In this document: positions 1 to 59,340 of the stretch, piece after piece
Numbering within the stretch: position 1 is the first letter of the stretch
How the letters are laid out: each line of letters starts with the position of its first letter
Assembly (NCBI GenBank): GCA_002269645.1
Contig: NIVC01002125.1
Location: 1-64,000 of the forward strand
DNA: 64,000 bases
Direction: 5' to 3'
Origin: Macrostomum lignano
Lineage: Eukaryota
Translations under genes and position numbers: made by a program
Notes under the pieces: generated by a model
What the model was told of the DNA's origin: nothing
What the model saw: the letters and a program-made list of their open reading frames with translations, nothing else
Database searches by the model: none

Positions 1-3000
1 ACGAACTATCATCCCGACAAGGCTGGCAGCGAGGCTGAAGACATGGCCAAGCTTCTGAATCAAGCCAAATCTGTCCTGTGCGATAAAAACCGAACGAATG
101 AAGTACGACGAACGTCGAGATGAAGCAACTGAGGATTACGAGAGTGGCGCTGATTTGCCTCGATTGCCAACTGGAAAGACACTATCGAAGGACCTCATGA
201 AGCAGAATCGCTGCTTGGAGGGAGAGTTCCGAGACGGCTCATGGAGCGCAATGCGACCCAAACGGATTCGCAAATAAGTTTTCGAGGAAACTCGTCAAGC
301 AGTTCTGGATCTTCAGGAGAAGCTACGGGTTATTAAGAGACGAGACGGTTCAACTCTGCAAAGCCCGTTTTTATTGAGAGTATCGCGTCAGGCGAGCTTT
401 CAGAAGAACATTTAGACGATGAAGTTCTCACCGAAGCCTGCAAATGGGCGAGAGAGACGCTAGAAAAAACGCTGAAAAGGAATACGCAGACGAAAGTTCC
501 ACCAGTTCAAGAAGGCGAACTAGTATGCTGCTATGACCTTTCCAGCTTGAAGGAAAGCGAATTGAGAAAACTCATGGTGATATTGATTCCTCCATCTGGC
601 TCCAAGCACTGTCAAGCGACCCCGAAAAGATGCGCCAAAGACTCAAAGATGTGTTACCCAAGTTTCGCGTCGACGTTAATAGAGAGAGAAGGGGTATAAA
701 GAAGTTTTTCCTCGGTGCTCGTTGTGTGGTATGCAGTGCCGAGAAAGATTTATCCGAACGAAATGCTTCCTTGTCGCAGGAGCCTGTCACGAGTTCAGAC
801 CTGTGTGTCTCACATGCTCTAAGCTTGAGTCCAAGAAGAGACTGCAGTTGTGGGAGGAGTTGGCAGCGACGCCTCAGACAGGATTTGTAGCTTCCTACGT
901 GGCGACAGGAATTGCAAGTATCGAAAGAATGATGCACAATCTGAAGATAAATCAGCCTAAGTCTGTGGTCGAAGCAACATTCGATCCTTCAATCGCTCTC
1001 ACTACAAAACTTTTCTTGCTGCTTCGGCGCTGTGGCTAGCTCTACAGAAGTCTCAACGCAATGAGCATGACATTGAGTCACTGCAGAGCCGTCAAACTGA
1101 GCTCGTACTGGAAATTCAGAAGAAAAAGATCCTGACCAAGAGCTGCGCTTGCTGTTACTCTTGGTAGAAAATGAAGAGTCTGCCTTGGAAAGTAATGAAA
1201 ATTTTCGATCTTTTTTAACACAAGAAGAAGCCCGGCTAAAGCTGATAGTTGACTCGGCCGATCTGAACAACTCGATTCACATTGCGTTCTCACAGTCACC
1301 GAGAGACAGGTTGCTGCTACGCCAGGCTAGCAAGTCAGCTAAGCTGGCTGACGAAGCACTTGCTAAAGCGAAACTTGAGTCAAGAATTGTAGGTCTATTT
1401 CTGAGAGGTGCAGGGATCCTCAGCTGTTCAGGTGATGTAACAGCTCAACTCAGAGGTATGAAGGACCTCACACAAGCAGTGCTCGAAGGATACTCTGTCT
1501 TCTACCACTCAGATTTGATATCATCTGTAATGCGTATTGTCTCTAGATTCGGAGCTCTTTGTGGGACATTTCCGGTTCATGCGCTGTTCCATTTAATCGA
1601 TAACCCATGGTCAGACTGCCAGGGAATGTTCAGTCGTCGGACTGCTTCGTCGGAAACACCAGCCAAAGCACAAGTCCCACTATTCCCAGGTATTTACGTA
1701 CCGGGACACAGCGTGCAAGCGTTGAAGAAGAGCGAGATCGCTATCTCCAGAAGACTCGAAAAGGGCCAAATGACGCCACTGCAAGCGGCAATGAGCGCAC
1801 TGGACCTTGCCATGGCTTGCGAAACGCTTGCTGAGGTCCTCGCCTGTTTTCTTGAGTGTGTAGCTCTGCTTCTACGAGCTCTGGAAATAGAGGAGTCGCT
1901 CTACCAGAGATATGCGCTCAAAGAAGCCATGTTTGAAATCGGGATCGCTTCAGTGAGCATTTGTCTCAACAACTTTTCCGATTCAGCTTTGTTAAACTAT
2001 GTTTCGAGACACGCTTTTGCCTTGCTGAGAGATGCCGCTACGAAAGTTGGACGACCAGATGATGTTGAACGGCTCATTTCGATTCTAGAGATAGTAGCCT
2101 TCACTGGTCGTTTCTCACCATTTGTGTCGCTGCCTCTGGTTCGTCCGTCTGAGTCGCTGGTATTTTCAAATGTGCTCAAAAAGTGCGCAGGTCAGCTTCT
2201 CTGTGGTTTGTCTCAGCCAGAAAATTCCTATTTTCTTGAACTACCGAAGAGTATCATAGCTTACCAGAGCTTGGAATACAGCATCAGCAGCTCTGCATTC
2301 ACTGAAAGTGAGACACGCCAGCTTGAGCTCTTAACTGCACGTGAGATGCTTAGAGAGCAGAATCTGGACTTTAACAACGTAGCCGCCCTGATAAATCCAT
2401 GCTATCTTGACGTTCCAGAGGACGGTTGGCTTGTACCAAATCAGACACTTGATTTTTCAGGATGCGGAAACACGTATTTGAGCATTGACAAGGTCATTTT
2501 TAACAAAATACGTTTCAAATTTCTGTCGTGGGCAGCAAAGGGAATCTTGTCAGCGATTTCGATGTGCTGACTGGTCTGCTAATGGATCATCCGGGTGTGG
2601 CTTTTAGCCTTGACAAGCCCGCCAATCTTCACGAAGCTCGATTCCACCCGTTTCAAAAGTACTGGAGTAGCCAACCAGATCTGCTTAAAGGAACTCCACT
2701 CCTAGACACTCTTTTCAACACGGACTACATCATGAAGCAATTCAGTTCCGGATTAGAGATCTGCAGGAAGCCACCGTTCGATCGGAGACCATTGCTTAAC
2801 GGTAGGGGTCTGTTCGCTGGACTGCCAGATCAGCTGCGCTGGCTGTTGAGACCTCTAAGCGAAAGAGGTGGGCAAAGATCTCGCTGCAGCAGATTCTGGA
2901 TTGCAGCCACAGACATGGAGATGAAAGTGGAGGAAACACCTGACACGATTGAGTTCGTGTTTGGAAAGGTTCGCTTGGAAGTCAAAACGCACAGGATGGT

Positions 3001-4570
3001 AGCTTCAATGGGTGGCGAACACCAGGACGCTGAGACTGATGATGAAGATTCTCCAGAGAATCAGTTCGCAAAGGACATGACGGAGGCCCTTCCCAGCTTG
3101 GGTAGATTCTTTCCCGAGTTTGAAAGACTAAAAGAGCTAACAAAGATTCCGAAACTCTGCCTGATTATTAAGGCCATGCACCAAAGCCTCGGAGCAATGA
3201 CCGTTCGCCAGGAGCAAGTAGAGCAAATTCTTGATCACGAACGAGCTGTTAGAATGGAAAAGAGTTATGAGATGGCGAAAAATGTTCTAGAGACACTGGA
3301 TCGAGCTGAATCAATCCCTGGTGCAAGCCACTATGATTGTTGCAATCTGGCCACTGATCAATTGCTAAGCCAACTAAACTTAAATAAGACCGAGACTGTC
3401 CGTGCCTTGCGTAGGCGAGATGTCAGAACGCTCCAGTACCTGTTGGCTGACAGTCTGCCATCAAGCTCTGCTGCGGATGTTAGGCAACAAATTCAAGATT
3501 TGATTGACTCGAAGAGAAGAGAATTTAGGAACTGGAACAGCAAGATACAGCATAAGTTAAATAGTAGCTTGCATCAGAGGCAACAGAAGATATCCGATTG
3601 TGATTGGGCACCCGCAGTGCTGAGCGCTAGTTCGGACGCAACAACACGATCGACAGTATACGGCGGTGTCTTACTGAATCCCAAATCAGTGCATTCCAGT
3701 TTTCGTATGGAGTTTCCCCCGGGAAGCACCGTTCACAAGGTAGTATCATTTCTGATTCTCGGCGAACTGAATAGCAAGCAGTTCGCCTCCACGCGGACTT
3801 TTGACAGTTTAGATTTAGGGACTGTAAACGAACTTCTTGGGAATAATTTTCCCGAAATGGAGAGTTCCTCTGACTCAGAGCTGGGCGGACGTTCAGGCCG
3901 TGACAATGAAGGCGCTACCAGCTCTGCTGACAACCAACCCAGAACATCTAAAAACGACCAGTTTTTGAATGATGAAGGAAACTGGTCTCACATCTTTTCT
4001 GACAAGCCCGGCCATGTGGTTCCACGAAACGCAAAAGAAGAATGGGAGCTGCGAAAAAAACTTGTCAGTATTCGAGATCTGGCTCTCAAAAAAGATCCGA
4101 GGTGCATTGACGCTTCTCAGCAATTTGTGCACGTCGAGGGACGAAAAAATAATTGTCGATTTATCTTCTACAAGGTAAGAAAAGATGCCATTTAAGTTTT
4201 AAAAATGATTGACTTTAAAGATTATGAAAAAGAAAATTTTAATGCATCTATATTTTTTAACAATGGTAATTTCAAGGACGAGAGGGAGACAAGTAGCGAC
4301 GTACTGCACCTAGCCTGGTGGATAAGAATCGATGGAAACGGGCGCATCGTCGGAGCAGGCTGCAACACGGTCCTAGCCAAGGAGCGAATTCCACAGTTGT
4401 TTCTGTTCTTGCGACCCATACCAACTGGCGAAGCTTTGATGGCATTTTTTCTGAGGGAGAAGCATAAGCTTCATGGCAAGAAAACAGACGTGGAGTTTCA
4501 TGATCACCTAAGCACCATTCGGAAAGGTCTGATTAATCAAATTAATTTAGTTAATCAGATCAAACCATAA
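1..4570 (+). CDS. Large multidomain protein, 5'-truncated by the window: J-domain, Cys-rich segment, helical region, DUF1598-like domain, low-complexity linker, toxin-like C-terminal domain. About 9 single-base frameshifts and one intron (4175-4276).
   Basis: Frame 1 from base 1 reads TNYHPDKAGSEAEDMAKLLNQAKSVLCD, and after a 1-nt shift R-M-K-Y-D follows (J-domain HPD motif and helix III/IV signature). Open frames continue with 1-nt shifts near 87, 206, 280, 370, 569, 745, 1012, 1125 and 2514 into ORFs 1149-2570 and 2528-4195. Donor AAG|GTAAGA at 4174/4175 and acceptor TTTCAAG|GAC at 4276/4277 join in phase 0 to the frame of ORF 4205-4570. Confidence 0.7.
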
Positions 4571-5031
4571 AGATACTAGAAACCGTAGATGGGCGTCTCG
4601 CCTATTTCGGGATTAAACTACTTTCAAATAGGCATCTGTTTGGAGTTTTTTGGATATATTTGTGAACCAAATTAAATTAATTTTTTTGCTGATTGTTATT
4701 TAATATTAGGATTCAACACTTGGTTTTGAGTGCTTAAATGTCTATGGCACTCGTGACCAAATATCATCGCTTTTGACGATCGGAATGGGAATTTGGGCAG
4801 TCGGAACGGGACGCCATAGACATTCAAGCCAGGCCACAGATCTCACCCTAGTCATGGACTTAAGCAGTTTAGCAAAGTCTACTGAGGGAGGCTAGGCCAT
4901 AGGCTATAAATTTGAACATTCAGTGTGGGAAAAAGCCATTCAAATTAAACGGGAATCGGACTGAGATTTTACAGCTCTCTGTCCCTCTCTCCCCTGTTTG
5001 TTCGTCTTTGGCCTGAAAGCGACCCCATTGA

Positions 5032-5345
5032 ATGGCGCCACCAATTCCTGTAGCAGATCGCCAGCGGCTGATTGATGCGATTGAACAAGGGTCATCCATC
5101 GCAGGAAGCTGCAAGAATCTTGTAAATCAAGAAAAAAACGGCATTCCGAATCGCTGCCAACTTTTGACTTGATGGCAAAGTGGAATCCCTTCCTCGCGGT
5201 GGTCGTAAATAAGGATTGTGCAAGGCCGATCAGGAAATGAGAGAATTCTTGGTTGAGAAACTCGATGAAAATCCTTTCCTGACGCTCAAGGAAATGTCTG
5301 AACTGCTGACTGAGCGCTTTCCCAAGAAGCCGCATGTTCACCTTG
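5032..5345 (+). pseudogene. Tc1/IS630-like transposase N-terminal helix-turn-helix remnant
   Basis: Reads MAPPIPVADRQRLIDAIEQGSSIA/AARIL*IKKKTAFRIAANF*LDGKVESLPRGGRK*GLCKADQEMREFLVEKLDENPFLTLKEMSELLTERFPKKPHV. The HTH, LPRGGR linker and ENPxLTLxEM pattern are typical of this superfamily. One frameshift, three stops, no DDE domain. Confidence 0.75.
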
Positions 5346-5434
5346 TTCTTCACTTTTAAATATTCCAGTGGCCCTGAGATATAAAAATACATTAAATTAG
5401 GCGAATTCCCGTTTTCAATGGCTTTTTTCCCATT

Positions 5435-5990
5435 TTGATTGTCAATTCCACATGCTATGGTTGTGTATTCCCAAGCAGCCCGAGCCTGTGGCCTGGCTTG
5501 AATTGAATGTCTATGACGTCCCGTTTTGATTGTCAATTCCACATGCTATGGTTGTGTATTCCCAAGCAGCCCGAGCCTGTGGCCTGGCTTGAATTGAATG
5601 TCTATGGCGTCCCGTTTTGATTGTCAATTCCACATGCTATGGTTGTGTATTCCCAAGCAGCCCGAGCCTGTGGCCTGGCTTGAATTGAATGTCTATGGCG
5701 TCCCGTTTTGATTGTCAATTCCACATGCTATGGTTGTGTATTCCCAAGCAGCCCGAGCCTGTGGCCTGGCTTGAATTGAATGTCTATGGCGTCCCGTTTT
5801 GATTGTCAATTCCACATGCTATGGTTGTGTATTCCCAAGCAGCCCGAGCCTGTGGCCTGGCTTGAATTGAATGTCTATGGCGTCCCGTTTTGATTGTCAA
5901 TTCCACATGCTATGGTTGTGTATTCCCAAGCAGCCCGAGCCTGTGGCCTGGCTTGAATTGAATGTCTATGGCGTCCCGTTTTGATTGTCC
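5435..5990. repeat. 91-bp tandem repeat, about 6 near-identical copies
   Basis: TTGATTGTCAATTCC recurs at 5435, 5526, 5617, 5708, 5799 and 5890. The last unit runs into the right inverted repeat. Confidence 0.95.
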
Positions 5991-6375
5991 AAATTCCCAT
6001 TTAGATTGTCAAAAGCGGTATTGCAATCAGGATATATATTTCTATTGCATTAAGTAAATAATAAACGTCGTTTAATTCACATTCCGAAGGACATTCTAAC
6101 CATAGACTATGATGAATTAAACAGCGTTTATCATATATGAACTTCGATTGATCCTGATTTCGAGGAGGATTATATGATATACCGGTATTAAACCACTTTA
6201 AAGCTCACTTTCAGGGAGGTTATTGACATAGATTTATTTTGCGCGATTTAATCGATCACTTTCCCGGACATTTTGCAAGGATTATTCTATGTATCTAAAT
6301 AAGCGAGCTTCTGCCTTCTCTTCCTTCGTGACTCAAGAAATTTCTTAATGAAATTTTGTCTATGGTAAGAATGTG

Positions 6376-6625
6376 GGGGCTTTGCCCCCACATCCCCAGC
6401 AGGGGCTTTGCCCCCACATCCCCAGCAGGGGCTTCGCCCCCACATCCCCAGCAGGGGCTTCGCCCCCACATCCCCAGCAGGGGCTTCGCCCCCACATCCC
6501 CAGCAGGGGCTTCGCCCCCACATCCCCAGCAGGGGCTTCGCCCCCACATCCCCAGCAGGGGCTTTGCCCCCACATCCCCAGCAGGGGCTTCGCCCCCACA
6601 TCCCCAGCAGGGGCTTCGCCCCCAC
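6376..6625. repeat. 26-bp tandem repeat with internal palindrome, about 9-10 copies
   Basis: Unit AGGGGCTTCGCCCCCACATCCCCAGC. Confidence 0.95.
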
Positions 6626-7818
6626 ACCCCATTCCCAACTTCAACCATAGACATACAAGTATGGCTCCGGGATTTATCTGAATACATCGGCTTCGGCTCT
6701 CGGGATTTAATCACATACCGACCTCAAACCCATAGAATATCTCATACATATCCTAGTTTTTGTCAAAATTACCATAGACAACACATTCCCGGCTCAGAAT
6801 AGTACAATTTTTAACGATAAAATGAGCAATCGTATTTTATATGACTAGCCAATATGCGATCACGAGCCATTTAAGCATGCTTTTTGTGTTTAATGCACGC
6901 TTTTACACATTTATATCCTGTTACAATAAGCACCTATTGGAAATGATTCAAAGTTCTGTGGGGTTGGCTACATTCCAAGGGTGTCACGCACATTTCATCT
7001 GTATATTTGATGGAATGCAGTTTACGACGTATGAAAGTATTTTTTCTCTAATAATAAGAATACACATACGAGCATATAGAGGGCAACTAGCAAGTGGAAA
7101 AGCATTGTCGTTTGACCAAATAGTGCAACAATGAGTTTAACCATGCAGGAATGCTTTAGTCTCACTTGAAAATAAACTACCGTAAACTCTACCGACAATG
7201 CTATACTATGTTTCTAGCATCAATGGGTCAAACAAATCAAATTTGAACTAAAAAACAATTGCTTTTTTCAGAATTCAACATTGTATCGGAACGAGCAAAT
7301 TCGGAGAGGCAGTACACTGCCGGAGCTCGACTCTCGGCGGCTGCCATTGCTGCTGCGGTGGAGGAAGGTCCGGAAGGATACGTTTTTGTAGAGTAGCTGT
7401 CTGGCTGCCTTTTAAGCTCCTTTACACTCAAGTGCAATCCCATTTCTGTGCGGATTTTTCGGATTTGCTTCCACTAAAATAGACATCACTTTTTTGTCTG
7501 TTAGCCGGGGCTCTAGTAGATTCCCTGTCATAGACTTGGTTGAGTATATAAATTTAGGACAACTTAGAGATCAAACTATTAGTTTTGAAGAAACATTTTT
7601 GCAATTTGGGAACTTTTTGTAACTTCCGGGATCCCGATGCGCATGATTGGTAACTTGTCAACGGCAATTTTTTTCATTTTTTATAGTTTTATGTGAAATA
7701 ATTGCATATCCAATTTGTATTTGATTTTCATTGTTAGTATTATACTTAGAGATTTAGCATATTTAGATAACTACTAAATAAGATATGTATTGGTATTGCT
7801 TTTGATTCTTACAATCAT

Positions 7819-8441
7819 GAGTGAGTGAGTGAGTGAGTGAGTGAGTGAGTGAGTGAGTGAGTGAGTGAGTGAGTGAGTGAGTGAGTGAGTGAATGAGTGA
7901 GTGAGTGAATGAGCGAGTGAGTGAGTGAGTGAGTGAGTGAGTGAGTGAGTGAATGAGTGAATGAGTGTGTGAGTGAGTGAGTGAGTGAGTGAGTGAGTGA
8001 GTGAATGAGTGAGTGAGTGAGTGAGTGAGTGAGTGAGTGAGTGAGTGAGTGAATGAGTGAGTGAGTGAGTGAGTGAGTGAGTGAGTGAGTGAGTGAGTGA
8101 GTGAGTGAGTGAGTGAGTGAGTGAGTGAGTGAGTGAGTGAGTGAGTGAGTGAGTGAGTGAGTGAGTGAGTGAGTGAGTGAGTGTGTGAGTGAGTGAGTGA
8201 GTGAGTGAGTGAGTGAGTGAGTGAGTGTGTGAGTGAGTGAGTGAGTGAGTGAGTGTGTGAGTGAGTGAGTGAGTGAGTGAGTGAGTGAGTGAGTGAGTGA
8301 GTGAGTGAGTGAGTGAGTGAGTGAGTGAGTGAGTGAGTGAGTGAGTGAGTGAGTGAGTGAGTGGGTGAGTGAGTGAGTGAGTGAGTGAGTGAGTGAGTGG
8401 GTGAGTGAGTGGGTGAGTGAGTGAGTGGGTGAGTGAGTGAG
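7819..8441. repeat. (GAGT)n microsatellite
   Basis: Direct reading, with GAAT/GTGT/GGGT variants. Confidence 0.98.
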
Positions 8442-9039
8442 AGTTTTGTGCTGGTTGTTACTGTTTTGCTACAATGATTGATGACTGCAATAAAGGAAAG
8501 TTCTCTGAATCATGCGGCAGAAGAAAAATGAATCATGAGTATTTTTATCGTTCATATTTTTTCTTTTTTCATCTGTTAGCCCATCCCGGTATTGAGGAAC
8601 CTCCGGTATTTGGGACCCCTACGCAGAGCTAACTTTAACAATCTTTTTTAATCTTAACCTTGAAATCAAAAACTGGTTTTCTGCAATCAACTTATAAAAT
8701 ATAGATCAAATCATTTCAACTGTACTCTCCATTTTAGATAGAATTTTTTCTATGCTGTCCTGACCTTTTTTAATTTGTCAGAGAATATACTGACCAGCAT
8801 AATTTTTTCTGCCATGATTACTTCTAAGTAGGGTGATACGAAATCACATGGCAAACCTTGTTTCCATATTTTCCCATTTTGCTAAACACAAATCACCCAC
8901 ATCACAAGCGCTTACGACGGAATAAAGCCATTATGAGGCAATTTGAAACTTTGAGGAAGAATACAACCGTGGATACTTCTGAGGTAGATTCTCCCATTCT
9001 GATTCTCCCATTCTGTGTGTTCCCGAATTGCAAAAAGTC

Positions 9040-9860
9040 ACCTGTCTGTGGCTTCATTCACCTGTCTGTGGCTTCATTCATCTGTCTGTGGCTTCAATTA
9101 TCTGTCTGTGGCTTCATTCATCTGCCTGTGGCTTCATTCATCTGTCCTGTGGCTTCATTCATCTGTCTGTGGCTTCATTCATCTGCCTGTGGCTTCATTC
9201 ATCTGTCCTGTGGCTTCATTCATCTGTCTGTGGCTTCACTCACCTGTCTGTGGCTTCAATTATCTGTCTGTGGCTTCATTCATCTGCCTGTGGCTTCATT
9301 CATCTGTCCTGTGGCTTCATTCATCCGTCAGTGGCTTCATTCATCTGTCAGTGGCTTCATTCATCTGCCTGTGGCTTCATTCATCTGTCTGTCTGTGGCT
9401 TCATTCACCTGTCTGTGGCTTCATTCATCTGTCCTGTGGCTTCATTCATCTGTCAGTGGCTTTATTCATCTGTCTGTGGCTTCATTCATCTGCCTGTGGC
9501 TTCATTCATCCGTCAGTGGCTTCATTCATCTGTCTGTGGCTTCACTCACCTGTCTGTGGCTTCGTTTATCTGTCTGTGGCTTCACTCACCTGTCTGTGGC
9601 TTCATTCATCTTTCTGTGGCTTCATTCATCCGTCAGTGGCTTCATTCATCTGTCAGTGGCTTCATTCATCTGTCAGTGGCTTCATTCATCTGTCAGTGGC
9701 TTCATTCATCTGTCTGTCTGTGGCTTCAATTATCTGTCTGTGGCTTCATTCATCTGTCTGTCTGTGGCTTCAATTATCTGTCTGCGGCTTTATTCATCTG
9801 TCTGTCTGTGGCTTCAATTATCTGTCTGCGGCTTCATTCATCTGTCTGTTTGTGTCTTCA
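9040..9860. repeat. About 16-bp minisatellite
   Basis: Unit CTGTGGCTTCATTCAT with 4-nt indel variants. Confidence 0.95.
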
Positions 9861-10179
9861 TTTATCTGACAGGTATTCACTGGGTCTCCCACTTGCCGTC
9901 TGAAATTCGTGGCATCTAATTAAACGCAGGGAAATTACCCCTCGCGCACGAAAGCCAATTATGTAAGGTCGGTCAGTAAAAGTACACAGTTGTTCGGGAC
10001 CAAAAGCAAAATATGTCTCAGCTGTAGCAAAGTCGCTACAGAGCTGTTCAGGCGTGTGGCAGACTGCTCATAGGAAAAAAGAGACCCGGAAAAGGAGTAA
10101 AAATAGATTGACTACTTGGCACTACTCATGAGCTCCTTTCCCTAATTCGATTGCTTTGATGAAGCCAGCATGTACCAGA

Positions 10180-10412
<233 letters not shown>

Positions 10413-10526
10413 AGCGATTGACTTCAGCTCCTTGCACTGCAAATGACGCAAGCTTTTCCAACTCTCGCTCAGGCTCACTGGGTCTGGGGTGGCGGCTTTC
10501 AATGTTGCTGAGTATAGATTGAAGCC

Positions 10527-10889
10527 GGGAGGCCGTAGCCTTTGTGTGCCAGCGGCCCAGGCTCGATTCCAAGTGCAGTCGCATGAATCCTATATACTAA
10601 AATTTGGGGCTAAATTTGAATCTCGGCTTGGCTCTGCTCGTGCAATTAACGGCCTTGAGGCCCAACCCCCAAGGCACAGTGAAGTGTACATGCCTAACGA
10701 TAAATAAAGTCAGGGCCGCTGTACACTCCTGTGTGAGTGCCTGTGCGTATGACTGCGTACGTATCCGCGCGCTTGTGTGCCTGCTCAGGGGAGTCGGCGG
10801 AATGGGCAGTAATGCCTCTCGTCGGTTGTGTGTCTATGTCGCTTAAAGTGCGCCAGGGTGCACACAGCCCCCTGACTCTAGTAAAAGAA
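10527..10889 (+). mobile_element. tRNA-headed SINE, copy A (head partly deleted)
   Basis: Aligns by eye with 31637-32006, 35400-35754 (reverse) and 57641-57993. B-box-like GGCTCGATTCC and an A-rich tail. Confidence 0.85.
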
Positions 10890-10923
10890 TAGATCGAAGC
10901 CATAATCCATATTTGCATGGATA

Positions 10924-11185
10924 CCAGCCCTTCAATCCCTGCATCAATGCCAGCCCTTCAATCCCTGCATCAATGCCAGCCCTTCAATCCCTGCATCAAT
11001 GCCAGCCCTTCAATCCCTGCATCAATGCCAGCCCTTCAATCCCTGCATCAATGCCAGCCCTTCAATCCCTGCATCAATGCCAGCCCTTCAATCCCTGCAT
11101 CAATGCCAGCCCTTCAATCCCTGCATCAATGCCAGCCCTTCAATCCCTGCATCAATGCCAACCCTTCAATCCTTGCATCAATGCC
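10924..11185. repeat. 26-bp minisatellite, about 10 copies
   Basis: Unit GCCAGCCCTTCAATCCCTGCATCAAT. Confidence 0.95.
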
Positions 11186-15882: not shown

Positions 15883-16975
15883 TCACTGACTGACTGACTG
15901 ACTGACTGACTGACTGACTGACTGACTGACTGACTGACTGACTGACTGACTGACTGACTGACTGACTGACTGACTGACTGACTGACTGACTGACTGACTG
16001 ACTGACTGACTTGTGTGAGTGGGTGACTGACTGACTGACTGACTGACTGACTGACTGACTGACTGACTGACTGACTGACTGACTTGACTGACTGACTTGA
16101 GTGAGTGGGTGACTGACTGACTGACTGACTGACTGACTGACTGACTGACTGACTGACTGACTGACTGACTGACTGACTGACTGACTGACTTGAGTGAGTG
16201 GGTGACTGACTGACTGACTGACTGACTGACTGACTGACTGACTGACTGACTGACTGACTGACTTGAGTGAGTGGGTCGGTGACTGACTGACTGACTGACT
16301 GACTGACTGACTTGAGTGAGTGGGTGACTGACTGACTGACTGACTGACTGACTGACTGACTGACTTGAGTGAGTGGGTGACTGACTGACTGACTGACTGA
16401 CTGACTGACTGACTGACTTGAGTGAGTGGGTGACTGACTGACTGACTGACTGACTGACTGACTGACTGACTGACTGACTGACTGACTGACTGATTGACTG
16501 ACTGACTGACTGACTGACTGACTGACTGACTGACTGACTGACTGACTGACTGACTGACTGACTGACTGACTGACTGATTGACTGACTGACTGACTGACTG
16601 ACTGACTGACTGACTGACTGACTGACTGACTGACTGACTGACTGACTGACTGACTGACTGATTGACTGACTGACTGACTGACTGACTGACTGACTGACTG
16701 ACTGACTGACTGACTGACTGACTGACTGATTGACTGACTGACTGACTGACTGACTGACTGATTGACTGACTGACTGACTGACTGACTGACTGACTTGAGT
16801 GAGTGGGTGACTGACTGACTGACTGACTGACTGACTGACTGACTGACTGACTGACTGACTGACTGACTGACTGACTGATTGACTGACTGACTGACTGACT
16901 GACTGACTGATTGACTGATTGACTGACTGACTGATTGACTGACTGACTGACTGACTGACTGACTGACTGACTGAG
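15883..16975. repeat. (GACT)n microsatellite with TGAGTGAGTGGG interruptions
   Basis: Direct reading. Confidence 0.98.
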
Positions 16976-17870: not shown

Positions 17871-18596
<726 letters not shown>

Positions 18597-20691: not shown

Positions 20692-23600
20692 TCACTGCGG
20701 CGAGGGAAGCTGGTGGCCATTGGAGGCGGCGCACTGCAGCTCCAGCGCCGGCGGCTCCTCTTCTGCCCCCTCCTCCTCGATCGCCGCTTCGACGCTGCCG
20801 TTACCAAGCTTGCCGTCGCCGTTGCTGCAGCCATTGACGTCGCCGTCGCCGTAGCCCTGGACCGCCGCCCGAAGCCGCTGCAGCTCCTCCTTCTGGGCGT
20901 CGTATTTCGCCCGCAGCCGCCGCACATCCGGCGAGCGAAGCTCCTCAACTTGCCGGCGAAGGCGCGCCAACTCGTCCCGATCGACCTCGGCCTGGGCGCA
21001 GCGCCCCGTCAGCCGGTCGACGACCTGCTGCAGGCCGTCGATGCGAGCCTGATAACCCGACTTGACCTTCTCCACCATGGCCAGAAACTGCGGGGTGGCC
21101 TTCTCTGGCAGGTGGCCTTCGCCCCAGTCGGTAAGCGACTCCCAGTCGGATGCGATGGACTCTGCGAAGGAGTAGAGTGGGTTGCTAATCTCGCTAGTGG
21201 ATTGCTAATCTCGCTAGTGGATTGCTAATCTCGCTAGTGGATTGCTAATCTCGCTAGTGGATTGCTAATCTCGCTAGTGGATTGCTAATCTCGCTAGTGG
21301 ATTGCTAATCTCGCTAGTGGATTGCTAATCTCGCTAGTGGATTGCTAATCTCGCTAGTGGATTGCTAATCTCGCTAGTGGATTGCTAATCTCGCTAGTGG
21401 ATTGCTAATCTCGCTAGTGGATTGCTAATCTCGCTAGTGGATTGCTAATCTCGCTAGTGGATTGCTAATCTCGCTAGTGGATTGCTAATCTCGCTAGTGG
21501 ATTGCTAATCTAGCCAATCTCGCTCAGTTTTCTGTCAACCTGCTGCTTATTTCCGCTAACGTAAAAACATCCTTCTTCTAGCTATGAATACAAATGGCCT
21601 TGTCAAATGTAGCGCTAAGTCTCCCCAGTATCGAAGTGGCGGTAGGAGCTGCGCTGTAATCGAGGTGAGCTTTTTCTACACGGGCGGAGGTAACAGTTTG
21701 GTCTCGTGACTACCGCTTGTGTTCTCTATGTGTTGTTTTTGTGTCTGTATCTGGGCCTAGACTGGGAGTGCAGAGGGAAACAACAAGGGAGAGAGAGAGA
21801 GAGAGCTAAAGCCTCCATAGTATCGATTCTAGATTTCGCATTCTCTACGCGACAACAGCGGAGCCAGATGTGACTGCACCATTGGCTTCGCTACACTTAG
21901 AGTTGGAAAATTTCCTCGTCACTTTCCGAGCTCAGCTACGAAAATATGCGCCGACCAGCAAATGAGTCAAAGGTGAAGGAGAAGAGATGAGAGAGGGTAG
22001 ATAGGAGTGATGGCTCCAAACAGGAACCAACTGCTTCTGCTCACCTTCGAGCGTCATCGGGCTGCTGGGCGCTTTCTCGGGCTTGAGCTGATCCAAGAAG
22101 GCCTCGGCCGACGATTTTGCCGCAGCCGAAGGAGGCGCCGGCCCGGCAGCTTGATTAAGTCGAATATTGGGCGCAAATTCCTGGGGTTGCACTTGCCTCG
22201 ATTCTGCAGTTGCTGCTGCTGCTGCTGCGGTCTTCTGCTCCTGCTGCGACGAGCTGTCGGGACTGAGCAGCGCCGATGGCTTCTCTTCGTCTTCTGGAAC
22301 TTTTTGTTGCTGCTGCTGCTGCTGTGGCGGCTGCTTTTGCGACTGTTGTGCCGGACTAGTAAGGCCGTTGCTGCATCTAAATGCGATTCAACGGTATTCG
22401 ATTGCGTTGTATCAAAAAAACAGCAATAAAGAGCATCTGTAAAATTAATTTAGGAAGGAACTCACGGCGAAATCGGACGAATTGCCCCGGTGGCGATGCC
22501 GTTCTCAATGTGGCACCGTCTGCTGTTGTTGAGCAGCTTGTGCCGTTTTGCCTCTGACTCGGGACCGACTCCGTGATGGTTTCCATTGGCAACGGGCTGC
22601 AATGACAGAATGCAATGAATTATATTCCAGGGATCTGATACCGAATGACCCGATACCGAAATGGCACCAGTTGGTCCCGATACCGAAATGGCATCGAATG
22701 GTTCCGATACCGAAATGGCACCGGTTAGTCCCGATACCGAAATGGCACCAGTTGGCCCCGATACCGAAATGGCACCAGTTGGTCCCGATACCGAAATGGC
22801 ACCAGTAAGTCCCGATACCGAAATGGTACCAGATGGTCCCGATACCGAAATGGTACCAGATGGTCCCGATACCGAAATGGCATCGAATGGTTCCGATACC
22901 GAAATGGCACCGGATGGTCCCGATACCGAAATGGTACCAGATGGTCCCGATACCGAAATGGTACCAGATGGTCCCGATACCGAAATGGTACCAGATGGTC
23001 CCGATACCGAAATGGCACCAGTTGGTCCCGATACCGAAATGGCACCGGATGGTCCCGATACCGAAATGGCATTCAAACATGAATTTAGGGAACAACTCAC
23101 CAGCAGCATCCCTGGCCGCTTCCTGGCCTCAAATCTGGCCTTCACAGCCTCCAGCGTTCTCTCCTGACTGTCCGAGTCCCGCTCGGCCAGCCGCCTGTCC
23201 AGCATGAGGTACAGCCGCCATTTGGTCGAATCGAAGCCCCAGTGGCAGGTCTCCCGCTCCGGCTGCACGTGGACGTGTCCGACAAACTGGGCTGGCGACA
23301 ACAAGCCGGAGCAGCCCGAGCACACGATACACGGCGCCTCCGGGCAGGTGTACAGCCGGGGAATGAGGAAGCCGCGCTGCTTGCCGAAGCAGCGGTGGTA
23401 AACGCAGGCTCCATCCAGCCCGGTAAGCGAGCCTTGGTAGCGCGGCAGATCCGGGCTGTTCAGCAGCAGCCATTTGCACAGCCGTTCAGCGTCCGACTTT
23501 GTGATGAGGCCGCAGTTCTCTAGGCGAGGCCCGAACACGCGGCGCTGCTGCAGCAGGTTCATCTGGTTGCTGGTGCAGCGCTGGCAGTAGATGTTAAGCT

Positions 23601-24249
23601 CCTCGCAGACCCGGTTGATGTCCGCCAAGGTGACCCCCGCCCGCAGCAGCACATTGTTAAGCACCTGCGGCAGGCACAGTCGCTTTTCGCCTCCAACAAC
23701 AAATGCGTAGATGGCTTTGCCTTCGAGAATTGTCTCGACAAAGTCGCCGGTCTCCCTTGAGGCTCTCGAGTCGGGCGGTTGGAGCGGTGGTGGCGGCGGT
23801 GGTGGAGGCGGAGGCGGCGGAGCGGCCCTGGCCGCAATCAGCCGGCCGTCCACTTGAGCTCCGATCGCGTGCAGCCCGGCCGGGAAAACCTGCGCTGCCG
23901 CCAGCTTCAGCTGCGGAGGTGGCGGCGGCGGCGGTGCTTGTGGCGGTGGCGGCCGCGGCTGCCGCGGCGGGGGCTGGAGATGATGATGAGGATGCGGCTG
24001 GCGCTGATAGGCATGGTGATGCTGATGATGCGGAAGTCGCTGTTGTTGCTGCTGCTGTTGCAGGTGCTGATGCCCATGTCCTGCCGACTGCATATAGGGA
24101 TAGGCGCCCAAAGGCTGGCCTGGCTGCATCTTCGCTGAGGCAGCAGCGGCGGCTGCAGCGGCGGCTGCCGCGTAGCCCTGCATGTTGTGCAGCATGGACA
24201 GCGAGGCCGAGGACGTCTGGTTGAACAAGTTGAATCCGTTCGAATTCAT
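20692..24249 (-). CDS. SKI: SKI/SnoN-family transcriptional co-repressor, 4 exons: 24249-23101, 22596-22466, 22376-22045, 21161-20692 (693 aa)
   Basis: DHD domain (ETILEGKAIYAFVVGGEKRLCLPQVLNNVL...CGLITKSDAERLC), SAND-like SMAD4-binding domain (VYHRCFGKQRG...CIVCSGC...SPAQFVGHVH...TCHWGFDSTKWRLYL) and a C-terminal coiled coil. All three introns are GT-AG and phase-consistent; the exons total 2082 nt. SKI and SKIL cannot be distinguished. Confidence 0.93.
21186..21517. repeat. 20-bp minisatellite in SKI intron 3
   Basis: Unit GGATTGCTAATCTCGCTAGT. Confidence 0.95.
22650..23070. repeat. 27-bp minisatellite in SKI intron 1
   Basis: Unit CCCGATACCGAAATGGCACCAGTTGGT. It explains the repetitive part of ORF 22462-24255. 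Confidence 0.95.
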
Positions 24250-24605
24250 TGCCAACCGCTTGCTGCTGTTGTCGCTTAATTAGTGGCTTAAGTGGCCAGG
24301 TATTGGCAGCAGACGGCTGTCGGCATGGGTAGCCAGAAATTCCTCCAGTCTAAATATTTATTCCTCTATCCCCTTTTCTTCTTTTAGAAGAGAGAGGGAG
24401 AGAGAGAGGGGAGAGGTGGGGCGCAGGCAGTTCGAGGATGGCAGACTGGCGGAGGCTCTGGAGTGGCTAGTAAACACTGGACTTTAGAGTTTAACTGCGT
24501 TCGTTCTGAACCTAAGAGGAAGAGTTGGAGGACGGGGTGGGTGGCGCCGTCTCGGGGGTATCAAGTACGCTGCGCAGTTTTTAGCTTCGGTGAACTTCTC
24601 CCGCT

Positions 24606-42544: not shown

Positions 42545-43315
42545 ATTTTACTTTAATAAAAAGAATTCTCTCTAGCGTGCCTCCATGGACGCCCCCTCTC
42601 TCTCTTGATCTCTTGAGCTGCCCTTTTCTATATCACAATTTTTTCTGATCAGTTTGTTTTTCGTCCTCGTGTCTTTTGCTGAGAGATGAGACGGGTAGCA
42701 ACTTTTTATCGAACGTTTTTTTCAATAATCACGCATGATGTGAGCGGTTTTTTATTGTTAGTAGACTACTGTAAGTAGCACGTTTCGCTGACCAGCCGAC
42801 ATTGGTGCTGCAAACTGGTGAAGGACTACAACTCGATTCATTTTTTTCTGAGGTCTGAAAATCAAAGCTGCACTGCTGAACTAACTGTACATTAGCTTGG
42901 CTTTTCTAATGTTGAGCAGATCCTTGGGCTAAAATATCACTCACTTCATCGATTCTGTCCCTTAAATTATTCACTATGCAGTATTTGCTTATGAATTCCT
43001 GTCAAGTCGAAGGAACCCAAAGAATGGTACAAAAACAGGTCAGGTATTTTTAAAAGCTTTTCTCAAGACTTTTTATTGAATTTTTAACGGGTTTTTTTAA
43101 GCTGCTAAGTTGCAAAATTTCGAGTAATTTCTCTTTTAGCTCAAAGTGTGCTGAATTTCAGTATGGAACATTAAATATGCGAGAAATAAATTGCAATCAA
43201 ATTCAGCGCATGCGATGGTACCTCGCTTCTAATTTTATTAAGCCAGCTCTTCGTGTCTGGATTAAAACGAAGTTGCAAATTCACTCAGATTATAGATGAG
43301 AAACACGTGCCGTTC

Positions 43316-45021
<1,706 letters not shown>

Positions 45022-45099
45022 ATGCAATAAGTTTCTACCGGCAGTACATGCTACAAAAGTACACTAGAAGATAATTTTAACGTGCCTGCAGATTCTTTG

Positions 45100-46199: not shown

Positions 46200-49100
46200 T
46201 GTCTGCAGCTGAAATGTCTGGCTGACTTCCAGTAAATGATATCGAACTAGAAGTTGAATAGCAAAAGTTGAATTAACTACCTGCAGGCCAAGACAGCCAC
46301 CAATGGAGGCAAATGTCTCCCTCAGTCCCATCCAGCTGTTTAACAGGTCGGATAGTCGGTCGAAGCAGCCCTCCTGATACCAGCTAGTGCTCGGGTTGGT
46401 ATTGTTGTAGCTGCAGTTGATGTCCACCGGTTTGAGAGTGGACATGTTGTACTTGCAACAGGTGACCGGATAGGCAAGCCCTTGAAACAATGAATCAGCG
46501 AGTACACAGATATTGAAGGTGATATGCATGGATACATCTAGCAACTAAGTTATAGTGCGAAGACTAATTTGAATTGTTTGTAGAAACTTTCCAAACAAAA
46601 GAGACCCGTAGCGGACGAACTTCTTTGGAGCGTTTCGTGTTTCACATTCTCGGATAAAATTTCCTGGTTGAGACCTTTCGATGCTTCTTTCGAGAATCTT
46701 GCAATCCTCTGACCAAATCTTTAACTTTCGCACCTAACACAATTTTAACCTTTTCTCTTCTTTTGGAACCGTTTTCTGGCCTATCAAAGTATTCCTTTTA
46801 CTGCAATCGTTGCTGTCTTTGGATGAGAGGGTTGAGGGCCATTTTGGTGCAGTGAAAGTCATGCATACACTAAAGCTGGGGTCAGCTGCAAACTTTTTAC
46901 CTCAAGGGCCAGATGAAGAATCCAGCTCATGGCTGCGGGCCAGATGAGGGGTCTACGACAATTGACTGCGGTCAATTTGACTGCGGACAATTTGACTGCC
47001 GACAATTTGACTGCCGACAATTTGACTGCCGACAATTTGACTGCCGACAATTTGACTGCCGACAAAATGACTGCGGACAAAATGACTGCGAACAAAATGA
47101 CTGTCGACAAAATGACTGCGAACAAAATGACTGTCGACAAAATGACTGCGGACAAAATGACTGCGGACAAAATGACTGCGGCAATTTGACTGCCGACAAT
47201 ATGACTGCCAACAAAATGACTGCCGACAAAATGACTGCGGCAATTTGACTGCCGACAATATGACTGCCGACAAAATGACTGCCGACAATTTGACTGCCGA
47301 CAAAATGACTGCGGACAAAATGACTGCGAACAAAATGACTGCGAACAAAATGACTGCGGACAAAATGACTGCGGCAATTTGACTGCCGACAATATGACTG
47401 CCGACAATTTGACTGCCAACAAAATGACTGCCGACAAAATGACTGCGGCAATTGACTGCCGACAAAATGACTGCCGACAAAATGACTGCGGCAAATGACT
47501 GCCGACAATATAGAAAACAAGAGGCCACCCCTCCTCCTCTCTCCCCCAGTCCCTCAATGTTCGCCTCTCTCTCTCTCTCTCTCTCTCTCCTCTCTCTCTC
47601 AATGGAGTTTTATGAGTTTGCTCGCCACCTAAACTTGTGGGCTCCACTGATCACCCTCTCCTTTTATTATTTGACTCCAAACCCCAAAGTTGGCAACCCC
47701 AAACACCAAAACCAAAAGCCTAGCCTAGTTGTGCACAGCTTTATATTGACGAATGAATTTGAAAAACTTGCTAGGCGCATTCTCGTTATGCAAAAGAGGA
47801 GAGATGAGAGATGAAGGCGGAGAGAGCAGAGTGCAGAGAGACGAGAGAAGTGAATAAAGGGGAGAGAGTATAGAAGAGGGAAGAGGACTAAGGAAAGAGA
47901 GGAGTCAAAAGAGGGGAAAGAGAAGAGTACAGAGGAGAGAGGTAAGAGAACATACCAGTATAAGAGAGTAAAGATGACAGATGAGAGAGGGGAGATGAGA
48001 GAGCAGAGACGAGAGAGAAGAGACGAGAGAGAAGTGAGAAAACAGAAGAGAAGATAGAAGGTTCAAAGGATGCAAGGAACATAGGGATCGAGAGGCAGAA
48101 GTAGAGGCCAGAGTTTTTCTGACATTCTGCGCCGCACCCCAGCCAACAATATCAATAGTTTGCCTCCAATCCTAATTTTACACGAATGTAATCTATGTTT
48201 TGTTTAACTCTAATAATAAAAGTTTTTGCTTGAGTTTAACTTCACATTTTAGAATATATGCAAAATAGTTCCTAAGATTGGAGTTCCCATTTCCCACTGT
48301 TCAAAATCCGCGGGTTTCAACAGCTGTTACAGCTTGTTGTATAAAGGTTATGTGTTCTGTTCTGCATCATTCTAGCTCGTAAAGAGAGGAGAGGAGAGGA
48401 GAGGAGAGGAGAGGAGAGGAGAGGATAGGAGAGGAGAGGAGAGGAGAGGAGAGGAGAGGAGAGGAGAGGAGAGGAGAGGAGAGGAGAGGAGGAGAGGAGA
48501 GGAGAGGAGAGGAGAGGAGAGGAGAGGAGAGGAGAGGAGAGGAGAGGAGAGGAGAGGAGAGGAGAGGAGAGGAGAGGAGAGGAGAGGAGAGGATAGGAGA
48601 GGAGAGGAGAGGAGAGGAGAGGAGAGGAGAGGAGAGGAGAGGAGAGGAGAGGAGAGGAGAGGAGAGGAGAGGAGAGGAGAGGAGAGGAGAGGAGAGGAGA
48701 GGAGAGGATAGGAGAGGAGAGGAGAGGAGAGGAGAGGAGAGGAGAGGAGAGGAGAGGAGAGGAGAGGAGAGGAGAGGAGAGGAGAGGAGAGGATAGGATA
48801 GGAGAGGAGAGGAGAGGAGAGGAGAGGAGAGGAGAGAGAGGAGAGGAGAGGAGAGGAGAGGAGAGGAGAGGAGAGGAGAGGAGAGGAGAGGAGAGGAGAG
48901 GAGAGGAGAGGAGAGGAGAGGAGAGGAGAGGAGAGGAGAGGAGAGGAGAGAGAGAGGAGAGGAGAGGAGAGGAGAGGAGAGGAGAGAGGAGAGGAGAGGA
49001 GAGGAGAGGAGAGGAGAGGAGAGGAGAGGAGGGGAGGGAGAGGAGAGAGGGGAGAGGAGAGGAGAGGAGAGGAGAGGAGAGAGAGGAGGAGAGGAGAGGA

Positions 49101-51748
49101 GAGGAGAGGAGAGAGAGAGGAGAGGAGAGGAGAGGAGAGGAGAGGAGAGGAGAGGAGAGGAGAGGAGAGGAGAGGAGAGGAGAGGAGAGGAGAGGAGAGG
49201 AGAGGAGAGGAGAGGAGAGGAGAGGAGAGGAGAGGAGAGGAGAGGAGAGGAGAGGAGAGGAGAGGAGAGGAGAGGAGAGGAGAGGAGAGGAGAGGAGAGG
49301 AGAGGAGAGGAGAGGAGAGGAGAGGAGAGGAGAGGAGAGGAGAGGAGAGCAGGAGAGATAACTGAGAAGAGACAAACCCTGAGCGGGCCGGATTGCCATT
49401 CTGAAGTGTCCAAGGACCCGAGGACCGGATAGAGAGGCTTTGCGGGCCGCGTATGGCCCGCGGGCCGGAGTAAGCTCACCCCTGCGGTAAAGTCTCACGG
49501 ACTACTTAATTGTCGTTTATCTACTTAAGTAGTCCGTGTGAAGTCTATCGAGTTCGGTAAGAGTTCACGAGAAGCTTGAAGATAGAAAAGATTACGAGAA
49601 GAACGGCTGTAGTTGTTTAGCCTAGATTTAGAACGTGGTGAACTACAGGTAGAGGGCATACGAAGCTGAAGATTAAAAAAAAGAGAAAGCGATGGATAGA
49701 AAGCAAGATGACTTTGCCACAGAAGACTCCTTGCACGGCCATGAGTGAGATCTAGAACTTTGGCAATTGGTTCTGTTGCTATTATTGCATAGAAATCCTC
49801 AAAAAGCTCACCATAGCTGAACGATCTGTTGTTCTCCTGATAGGTGTAGATTCTGTTCCAACGTGGACTAAGCGTTTGAAAGTCTGTACCATTGTTGACA
49901 CCGCAACACCCAGCGAATATGTGCAGCAGATTCTGGGACAGAGTTTGCACATTGTCGCTGCCAAGGCCTGTGTACTTCTGCAGACCGTCCAGCATGGCGC
50001 GTTTGATGAGCTGCTTGAACTGTTGAAGGGTTTTTTAATTGTAGTGCGCTGGGTTTTTTAAAGATTGGAAATCCAGTTGCCAAGGGTTATTTTCGGTTGC
50101 CCATTGGCAACTAGCCAAATTCTCGAGGATGGATATTTCCAAGGCTACTTTTGAAAAGCAGAAATTTGTTCTCTCAACTCTAAGATTGCTATCTCTGCTG
50201 CAAACAATAACAAACTAACAATTCCATCATATCTATTTATACTCGTATGGCACTTTTATTACACTTACAAAATCATACTTTGAAATTGGCAACTGGCACG
50301 GGGAAAATAAAGTTGCCAGATTGGCCTCTGATGCCAAAAATCCAGTTGCCAATGAGATTTTCAAGGGCCCAAAAAAGCCCGTATGGCCTAAAAAAAACTC
50401 AGGTAGTGCGTTCGCCGTAAACTCATGGGAGCAACTACGAGACCGAAGTAAAGCTCCCAAACTCCCAAAACAAACCGACTAACTGAAATCTCCTCAAAAT
50501 ATCTATCTAGTACAGCCAGTTTGGCCCTGAGCTTCACTTCGGGCTCAGTGACCATTAATCCCGCGCTTAATATGACATCGCCCTTTGGCTTTCGACAAGT
50601 CACCCCATTGACTCGGCACATTGGCAGCAAAGGCCGAGTCCGAGCTGCATCCATAATGAGACTCTGGGTCCTCAAACCAGATTATTGAGACATCTTTTTA
50701 AAAAGGATTCTTCCATGAAAGGTGTCAAGTAGGCGAATACGTTGAGATTGAAACAGAGAAAATAAAATTACTTGCCATTTCAAGCTTGGTGAACCACACC
50801 GCGACTAAAACCAGCTGACCAGTGAGCAGCACCAATAGATAGGCTGCGTACTGAAATTTTCAGGTGCATTTTGCATGGAATGAGTCCATTACAGAGTGAG
50901 TAGCCTATACCCAGACCCTTCTCCGGCACCAACAATGTATGCAGTGTCTCACAATGACCAGGCAGACACGGTTGCTGCAGCTGGCCCCAGACAGCCCAGG
51001 CAGCTCAGGCCGACAAGCGCCAGACCGGCGCCAATAAACACACCACCGATGGCGCCGGAAACCTCGCCCAGACCGGACAGCAGGCTGTCCAAGTCGATGC
51101 CAAGGCCCGGCGGTAGGAGGCCGTTGATGTGGTTGCCAAGCGAGCTGAGCACTCCGCTATCGGATTTCAACAGATCGCTAAGTCCGGCGAAGCCCCAGGC
51201 AAGCAGGCAGCCGATCAGGGTAAGAGCGATTCCGATTGGCTGGCGAGATTGGTACATCGTTAGAGGGAACTGTCAGCTCACAAGCTTATTTAATTGTCGT
51301 GAGCTATAGGGTTGATTAAATCGTATTTCTGGGACCGTCTCAATGATGTTGGCACTCGATCTTATATAGCTCGTAGTTTGTGAATGCCAGCTGAGTAATA
51401 TCATTGAAACAAAATAGACACTTTGCTAATAAATTTGTTATGCTTAAGAAAGTTTGTACTTTCATATTGTATTAATTAGATTCTAGTGACCAGTCAAAGA
51501 CAAGCAAAAGTATTCAGAGAAGTCTGCTGTAGATTTGATACGTAGACTGTAGACTGTACGAACTGTGAGTATTCTTGCTAACCAAGCCAAACAACTCCAA
51601 CCATTTAAACACAGTCTTCAAATCGCTTATCCCCAACCCATTATAAAATTAAGACTACTATACCGATACTTACAATAAAAATCACGTTTAGCCCAGCTAG
51701 GAAGACGCAGCAAGCTGCTCTACAGGCTCTCAGAACTTGACTGGCCAT
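46200..51748 (-). CDS. Tetraspanin, exons 51748-51674, 51239-50953 (1-nt frameshift), 50850-50776, 50019-49812, 46480 to about 46200 (3' end uncertain)
   Basis: TM1 FLAGLNVIFI|PIGIALTLIG, TM2 GLALVGLSCLGCLG, TM3 YAAYLLVLLTGQLVLVAVW, large loop with CCG, PVTCC and EGC motifs, TM4 IGGCLGLQVVNSTFAIQLL. Splice phases are consistent once one base is restored in a G-run at 50985-50988. Confidence 0.88.
46960..47510. repeat. 15-bp minisatellite
   Basis: Units ATTTGACTGCCGACA and AAATGACTGCGGACA. Confidence 0.95.
48384..49350. repeat. (GGAGA)n pentanucleotide microsatellite
   Basis: Direct reading. Confidence 0.98.
50049..50402. mobile_element. 354-bp MITE with 8-bp target-site duplication
   Basis: Perfect direct repeat GTAGTGCG at 50041-50048 and 50403-50410. 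Termini CTGGGTTTTTT and AAAAAACTCAG form an 11-bp TIR with one mismatch. Internal repeated GTTGCCA/TGGCAAC motifs. Confidence 0.8.
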
Positions 51749-59199: not shown

Positions 59200-59234
<35 letters not shown>

Positions 59235-59340
59235 GCAGCAACAGCAGCAGACGCCTGGAACAACGCAGCAGCAGCAGCAGCCGCATTTAGCGGCTGTCAC
59301 CAGCGAGGCTGGGTCCTGGCTACTGTTCCAGCAGCCTTGA
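58504..59340 (+). CDS. Divergent Sox-family HMG-box transcription factor, single coding exon, 278 aa
   Basis: VKRPVNPYLLWATPRRKEIAAQNPRLNNADISRRLGEEWKALSAEAKQPFVDEATRLKAAFKSAYPDYK is a Sox-type HMG box. Poly-Ala N-terminus and Gln/Pro-rich C-terminus. Confidence 0.88.

Follow-up and report, generated by a model that had tools for sequence, protein, structure and literature searches.

The window analysed here is a stretch of 64,000 nucleotides (nt) of the free-living flatworm Macrostomum lignano (contig NIVC01002125.1 of GenBank assembly GCA_002269645.1, positions 1 to 64,000 of the forward strand). Its left end carries, from position 1 to 4570, a large part of a gene for a J-domain protein, in which two coding exons flank an AT-rich interval of 102 nt at 4175-4276. 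The window is animal DNA, encoding Ski/Sno and HMG-box protein genes further to the right. The reading that we favor, at a probability of about 0.8, is that of an intact M. lignano gene for a class-C J-domain protein, in which intron 2 is an ordinary one and the C-terminal module serves for binding or targeting and is not a toxin. Both the gene and its 4174/4277 junction are already present in the public annotation, and the feature is hence a known one.

The gene was connected to its public models by an exhaustive phmmer search, in which the spliced C-terminal sequence of 171 amino acids (aa), also the query of the domain searches described below, was compared with 1.84 billion representative proteins and yielded two matches. 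The first of these, UniRef A0A1I8GVL3 ("J domain-containing protein", Macrostomum lignano), is 100% identical over residues 1-145, and its 90% cluster also contains A0A1I8HR59 (1,796 aa) and the partial NCBI protein PAA62765.1 (BOX15_Mlig019399g1). All members of the cluster are from Macrostomum lignano and are named either J domain-containing or hypothetical protein. A literature search on the locus tag Mlig019399 found nothing.

A first-pass annotation of the locus had drawn attention to a pair of peptides, one on either side of the interval and in phase with each other, and this is borne out by translation: WSHIFSDKPGHVVP is encoded at 3983-4024 and LAWWIRIDGNGRIVGAGCN at 4310-4366, in one shared frame (positions equal to 2 modulo 3). 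As had also been pointed out, the list of open reading frames (ORFs) gives the two halves as separate entries of the same frame, a long ORF at 2528..4195 followed by another at 4205..4570. The interval itself, described there as an AT-rich GT-AG stretch, is exactly 102 nt long, a multiple of three, and it has the borders AAG/GTAAGA ... TTTCAAG/G and one in-frame stop, the TAA at 4193-4195.

If no splicing took place, the protein would end at this TAA (...FIFYKVRKDAI, then stop), and the open stretch 4196-4567 would be untranslated 3' sequence, open by chance or as a relic. Read in the proposed frame, exon 3 scores no more than weakly positive for codon usage (0.035 bits per codon), which such an ending could accommodate, but the composition, the open frame and the public models all speak against it, and we regard it as improbable. 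The guanine plus cytosine (GC) content of 4175-4276 is 20.6%, compared with a minimum of 35.3% and a mean of 47.6% (standard deviation 4.2%) in 102-nt windows of the coding sequence 1-4174, so that the interval is the only one in 4.5 kb below 35% GC, and the coding level (48%) is resumed directly after the acceptor AG. Excision fuses ...NNCRFIFYK to DERETSSDVLHLAWW... in phase 0, and the 97 codons that follow the interval are free of stops, while mononucleotide shuffles of 4277-4567 are equally open in 0.29% of cases (p ~0.003). All in-frame GT-AG pairs that remove the stop were enumerated: a consensus donor, the textbook AAG/GTAAG, is found in 4175 alone, and 4276 is the first acceptor AG past the AT-rich stretch. 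The public models A0A1I8GVL3 and A0A1I8HR59 both read CRFIFYKDERETSS (FIFYK/DERETSS), which places the junction exactly at 4174/4277. The observation is thus confirmed and lies beyond chance.

The interval combines GT...AG borders of extended consensus with a frame that is restored on removal, and its composition is unlike that of the flanking exons and like that of the other intron of the same gene. It is probably an ordinary U2-type GT-AG intron of phase 0, the second of the gene, and splicing at 4174/4277 is strongly indicated by the sequence features and the predicted models. Training a codon-usage score on exon 2 gave no separation of exon from intron, and the score was dropped as a measure. 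A transposon insertion was also considered as the source of the 102 nt and was rejected, the window containing no second copy and the interval no terminal repeats beyond the splice-site CAAG.

The 5' end of the gene lies before the window and is found in contig NIVC01001901.1 of the assembly Mlig_3_7, which encodes PAA62765.1 and aligns to positions 1-10945 of the window with 99.56% identity. An ATG at position 327 of that contig opens 11 codons (MANSDLPSFYS), which are followed by an intron of 91 nt at 359-449 (GTGAGT...CAG, 32% GC) and then by LLGVTQAASEAEIL...; the Pfam DnaJ match crosses the junction of this intron 1. Counting intron 1 (91 nt) and intron 2 (102 nt), the gene contains two or more short AT-rich introns with GT-AG borders and much the same length. 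The partial coding sequence at NCBI, PAA62765.1, begins 9 nt inside intron 1. M. lignano uses spliced-leader trans-splicing, and the acceptor of intron 1 might double as a trans-splice site.

In the window as deposited, the coding sequence upstream is not read in a single frame. A frame map shows that the coding-like stretches before 2540 switch frame ~7 times, giving about eight frame segments. The differences from NIVC01001901.1 within the gene are insertions or deletions (indels) of 1-2 nt, mostly in homopolymers, at 85, 200, 278, 338, 351, 366, 606, 760, 837-838, 1010, 1114 and 2504; in addition, the second contig has one garbled patch at 2001-2020, and substitutions occur nowhere else in the gene. 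When its variant is taken at 11 of the 12 sites (all except 837-838), one stop-free frame of ~1,490 codons runs through 1-4174 and 4277-4570. No indels or stops are present in 2505-4174 and 4277-4570 in either assembly, and the segment 2505-4800, with the 102-nt interval and the stop codon in it, is base-for-base the same in both. In line with these differences, ML2 is a PacBio assembly, and Mlig_3_7 was obtained by re-assembling the same PacBio reads and polishing with Illumina DNA and RNA-seq data (PMC5730564).

We read the frame breaks as long-read consensus errors and not as decay, because single-base homopolymer indels dominate and there are no substitutions outside the garbled patch. From this comparison of the two contigs, the upstream frame breaks are taken to be homopolymer indel errors of the assembly and the gene to be intact. 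A decaying pseudogene, in which the frame changes at 85-2504 are true mutations and the intron is the relic of a once-functional gene, would account for the ~11 frame corrections that the window as given needs and for the 2-nt deletion (837-838) and the garbled patch that the second assembly keeps, and the use of the same PacBio reads for both assemblies would be compatible with it. However, the polished assembly mends 11 of the 12 breaks and the window mends the twelfth, giving an uninterrupted ORF with no premature stop, and together with the nature of the differences and the clean 3' part of the gene this makes decay very improbable. A small intron at ~2504-2570 was tried as an explanation of the last break, but the candidates (43 nt and 36 nt) have the wrong phase or no effect, and the real cause is a missing A in a homopolymer. 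Since such small indels break the J-domain gene, ORF-based readings of the window are unreliable, and wherever this assembly seems to show "separate ORFs" or "frameshifted genes", a comparison with the polished Mlig_3_7 contigs is needed.

The reconstructed product has 1,522 aa and an isoelectric point (pI) of 6.4. It begins with MANSDLPSFYSLLGV..., which is a J domain: the profile PF00226 matches residues 9-68 with 55.6 bits, above its curated cut-off of 27.8, and the HPD tripeptide is found between helices II and III, within NYHPDKAG at window positions 4-27. The same profile gives 50.2 bits on the model A0A1I8HR59, and J-domain matches in the PDB go down to E 6.5e-6. No signal-like N-terminal segment is present in the reconstructed protein, and a Pfam search of all 1,522 residues returns DnaJ alone and nothing past residue 68. 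The rest of the protein is composed of a Cys-rich segment, a stretch of ~700 residues that is mostly helical, a middle region of alpha/beta type, a linker that is acidic and rich in Ser, and a C-terminal module of 170 residues. The Cys-rich segment CVVCSAEKDLSERKCFLVAGACHEFRPVCLTCS (residues ~274-305, window ~720-830), with the pattern CxxC...C...CH...CxxC, resembles a small zinc-binding motif and has no Pfam match.

In a J domain, the HPD loop docks on Hsp70 and ATP hydrolysis is stimulated. Because a canonical J domain with its HPD motif opens the protein, a co-chaperone mechanism of the Hsp40 type appears the most likely one. The J domain would dock on Hsp70 and stimulate its ATPase, the long lineage-specific body would set the site or the client of Hsp70 action, and the C-terminal module would act as a binding or targeting end; both the mechanism and the role of the module are what we infer from the sequence. 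The architecture is that of the class C (type III) Hsp40/DnaJ proteins, as the DnaJ domain is above threshold and sits with an intact HPD at the extreme N-terminus, and as the remainder is unrelated to the Gly/Phe, zinc-finger and C-terminal domains of DnaJ. Unlike the members of this class, the flatworm protein extends over ~1,520 residues with no detectable relative after residue 70 in any library searched.

The searches with the C-terminal module gave negative or uninformative results. In a Pfam hmmscan of the 171 aa the best match, to a poxvirus family, was at noise level (E 0.16) and no toxin family appeared at E<=1, scans of the same sequence against NCBIfam and PHROGs returned no match, and a PDB sequence search produced no significant match (best E 0.29). 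Among 72,556 plasmids, tblastn at E<=10 found a single match, which is irrelevant, and a PADLOC match to a Type I specificity subunit (13.6 bits, E 0.0062) is weak and was taken as chance. Bacterial proteins at E<=0.001 were absent from the exhaustive phmmer search. The second of its two matches, a protein of 908 aa from an ENA contig of 218 kb (P0002, E 4.9e-5), was discarded, being a translated tandem repeat in which the 24-residue chance match GSWCHIFSSRCSDLIPHAGKEHYE is counted ~10 times; it has neither the GH nor the second motif. This case is a caution on phmmer lists, in which repeated short chance matches can inflate the significance. The 646-aa 3' part, the 515-aa middle region and the 171-aa domain were also run in word-index homology searches and gave no matches, but these negatives are weak, since the same searches missed the gene's own UniRef model, which is present in the collection. 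Judged by these searches, the C-terminal ~170 aa is an orphan module, with homologues undetected in any other organism.

It had been proposed in the first-pass annotation that the module is a toxin domain, recognizable from the pair HIFxxxxGH ... NGxIxxxGxN as of RHS/CDI type and a putative ribonuclease (RNase) of the BECR fold, and that a spliceosomal intron inside it would mark a domesticated eukaryotic gene and not bacterial contamination. In this scenario, the module would have come from bacteria as a BECR-fold RNase toxin of the RHS/CDI polymorphic-toxin type, been domesticated and gained the intron later. Such an origin would be in keeping with a module that ends a large protein, follows a low-complexity linker and has a pI of 9.3. 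The proposed pair, however, is absent from the BECR signatures tabulated by Zhang et al. in 2012 (PMC3482391), namely [KH]K/Hxx[ED]; DGx..R/N; D,H,DxxxR,E,HxxF; H/KH; and H,S,K,T,H,K,HxVP. The BECR families of that table are all present in Pfam and none of them matched the module. More generally, there was no significant match to curated Ntox, Tox, EndoU, Colicin or RelE families or to the polymorphic toxin families of NCBIfam, the Ntox, Tox and CdiA families staying unmatched in Pfam and NCBIfam at E<=1, and no homologues were found at the C-termini of bacterial RHS, CdiA, LXG, MafB or similar proteins. The absence of bacterial matches among the 1.84 billion representatives, and of significant or relevant ones among the PDB sequences and the plasmids, points in the same direction.

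The N-terminus of the protein provides a further argument. It holds no secretion or trafficking module (signal peptide, RHS/YD or FHA repeats, PAAR, LXG/WXG or pre-toxin), and a polymorphic-toxin origin is disfavored because a J domain stands in this place.

Two AlphaFold2 single-sequence models were obtained and are poor, with mean predicted local distance difference test (pLDDT) values of 40.7 and 43.3. At this low confidence, both show a loop with WSHIF...GH and its two His, one long helix, four strands and then helices. In these models, intron 2 would fall between strands 2 and 3, and a protein ending at 4195, as it would without splicing, would have its C-terminal module cut after strand 2. 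The predicted order of loop, helix and four strands fits the BECR core, and the same order is also seen in cystatin-like and several other small alpha+beta folds. When both models were compared with the PDB by Foldseek, no match reached E<=0.001 (best E 0.15 and 0.077, to unrelated folds). The non-significant top matches are to an RNase H1, to methyltransferases and to the NTF2-like domain of a carotenoid protein, and a cystatin-like protein ranks lower. Chains of the CdiA-CT(Kp342) complex are among these weak matches, in the second of the two lists, and would be in favor of a toxin, but folds of the NTF2-like and methyltransferase types rank above them, the cystatin-like match stands beside them, and neither model reaches a pLDDT of 45, so that they do not amount to evidence.

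The flatworm module thus shares with the BECR-fold RNase toxins (colicin D/E5, EndoU, RelE, Ntox7/19/21/35/36/41/47-50, CdiA-CT Kp342) its small size, its C-terminal position after a linker, its basic pI and, in the models, the predicted loop-helix-four-strand order with His in the pre-helix loop. It differs from them in that neither sequence nor structure gave a significant match, that a delivery module and bacterial relatives are missing and that the gene has a eukaryotic structure. Domesticated toxin domains are known in animals, such as the C-terminal GHH/HNH domain of the teneurins and the CIDE nuclease (PMC3482391), and the event proposed here would be of the same kind, with a large animal protein ending in a toxin domain. 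In those cases, however, the kinship to bacterial toxin families can be proven by sequence profiles, which is not so here. On the searches made, a bacterial origin and a nuclease activity of the module are unsupported, and we give the domesticated toxin hardly any credence. As slim is the chance that the module is a BECR-like ribonuclease, so far unrecognized and extremely divergent, that is fused to a J domain, whether of bacterial origin or not; if true, macrostomid flatworms would have an RNase of their own that is coupled to Hsp70.

Of the proposal in the first-pass annotation, the intron is retained, through its consensus sites, the drop in GC, the phase-0 ORF, the 91-nt sister intron and the public models, and the toxin domain around it is not: the proposed pair has no counterpart among the families of Zhang et al., and the spliced domain has no significant similarity to toxin nucleases in the profile, sequence or Foldseek searches run. 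Similarly, the gene is eukaryotic, as had been argued, given the neighboring Ski/Sno and HMG-box genes and the intron-split J domain of eukaryotic style, whereas its domestication from bacteria finds no support. The question of contamination is moot, because the whole window is animal DNA and the gene itself starts with such a J domain.

A number of points nevertheless weigh against the reading of the locus as a class-C J-domain gene with a C-terminal module for binding or targeting. The order of elements predicted for the module is the canonical order of the BECR core, in which a pre-helix loop and a helix are followed by four antiparallel strands (bioRxiv 10.64898/2026.08.28.747851). The chains of the CdiA-CT/CdiI complex of Klebsiella pneumoniae 342 (6cp9) appear in the Foldseek results, although non-significantly (E 0.3-0.7, template modeling score 0.22-0.26, root-mean-square deviation >12 A). 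With two low-confidence AlphaFold2 models as the guide, a very remote kinship to some nuclease fold is conceivable. The support for splicing consists of sequence features and predicted gene models, the role of everything past the J domain is drawn entirely from the architecture, and the negative word-index searches carry little weight for the middle and N-terminal parts.

The 3' end of the gene differs between the public models. Downstream of exon 3, ATTAAA signals are present at 4612 and 4671. The model A0A1I8HR59 instead uses a third intron, by which the final 14 codons of exon 3 would be exchanged for another end, and joining 4277-4526 to 7272-7396 reproduces its C-terminus exactly. The core of the C-terminal module is the same with either end, the TAA at 4568-4570 or the exon at 7272-7396.

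The predicted third intron of 2.7 kb spans a 91-bp tandem array and transposase-like fragments. The array, at 5428-5989, has 6.2 copies with 99% identity and, read on the minus strand, yields a series of 40-aa ORFs that are all identical. At 5032-5359, two short ORFs on the plus strand resemble helix-turn-helix fragments of transposases (MAPPIPVADRQRLIDAIEQG...; weak Pfam HTH_32, E 0.004). This region is probably a degraded element of the Tc1/mariner type just downstream of the gene. The coordinates of the gene and of the main repeat arrays are collected in Table 1.

Table 1. Features of the J-domain protein gene and principal repeat arrays in the window (TRF, Tandem Repeats Finder)
Feature	Position	Strand	Remarks and basis
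Exon 2 of the J-domain protein gene, 5' end before the window	1..4174	+	broken by indel errors at 85, 200, 278, 338, 351, 366, 606, 760, 1010, 1114, 2504; frame map, alignment to NIVC01001901.1
J domain, C-terminal half	1..109	+	HPD at 10-18 (CAT CCC GAC); Pfam DnaJ
Low-complexity Ser/Asp/Glu/Gly-rich linker (...NNFPEMESSSDSELGGRSGRDNEGATSSADNQPRTSK) before the C-terminal module	3840..3953	+	translation
Orphan C-terminal module, first half: loop with WSHIFSDKPGH (3983-4015), long helix, strands 1-2	3954..4174	+	translation; two low-confidence AlphaFold2 models
Intron 2 (probable), 102 nt, phase 0, GT-AG, 20.6% GC, in-frame TAA 4193-4195	4175..4276	+	sequence, models A0A1I8GVL3 and A0A1I8HR59, second assembly
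Exon 3: predicted strands 3-4 (LAWWIRIDGNGRIVGAGCN at 4310-4366), C-terminal helices, TAA stop 4568-4570	4277..4570	+	ORF list, translation
Possible third intron, donor AAAG/GTCTGA, acceptor TTTTTTCAG/AATTC	4527..7271	+	used by model A0A1I8HR59; prediction
Possible alternative terminal coding exon (EFNIVSERANSERQYTAGARLSAAAIAAAVEEGPEGYVFVE, then stop)	7272..7396	+	model A0A1I8HR59
ACTG x270	15885-16974		TRF
ACTA x181	17871-18594		TRF
CAGA x427	43315-45022		TRF
GAGAG x193	48384-49349		TRF
29-mer x46	60690-62035		TRF

Elsewhere in the window, a single-exon ORF of 597 aa on the minus strand (22462-24255) belongs to the Ski/Sno family, with a Dachshund-homology domain (Ski_Sno_DHD, 4.6e-31) and a SMAD4-binding domain (c-SKI_SMAD_bind, 3e-31). 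A 27-bp tandem array lies inside this ORF at 22649-23071 and may explain the weak Collagen and DUF3060 matches there. On the plus strand, an ORF at 32266-32862 matches the SOGA family (E 4e-8) with more than the gathering score and is probably an exon of a coiled-coil protein gene, and an ORF of 278 aa at 58504-59340 contains an HMG box (E 3.8e-22), possibly from a transcription factor gene of the Sox/TCF type. Scans of the window for tRNA genes and Rfam families gave no matches. More than 25 separate micro- and minisatellite arrays are present in the window (35 TRF rows at score >=200), and many of the listed ORFs of at least 150 aa are translated satellite arrays. These arrays fit the high simple-repeat content of the M. 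lignano genome (PMC5730564).

As it stands, the finding matters little, the gene and its junction being public, a short AT-rich intron being routine in an animal and the link to toxins being unsupported. What the locus does offer is a J-domain protein with ~1,450 residues past the J domain that are without detectable relatives. It is a candidate for a lineage-specific co-chaperone adaptor, amenable to RNA interference in a tractable flatworm.

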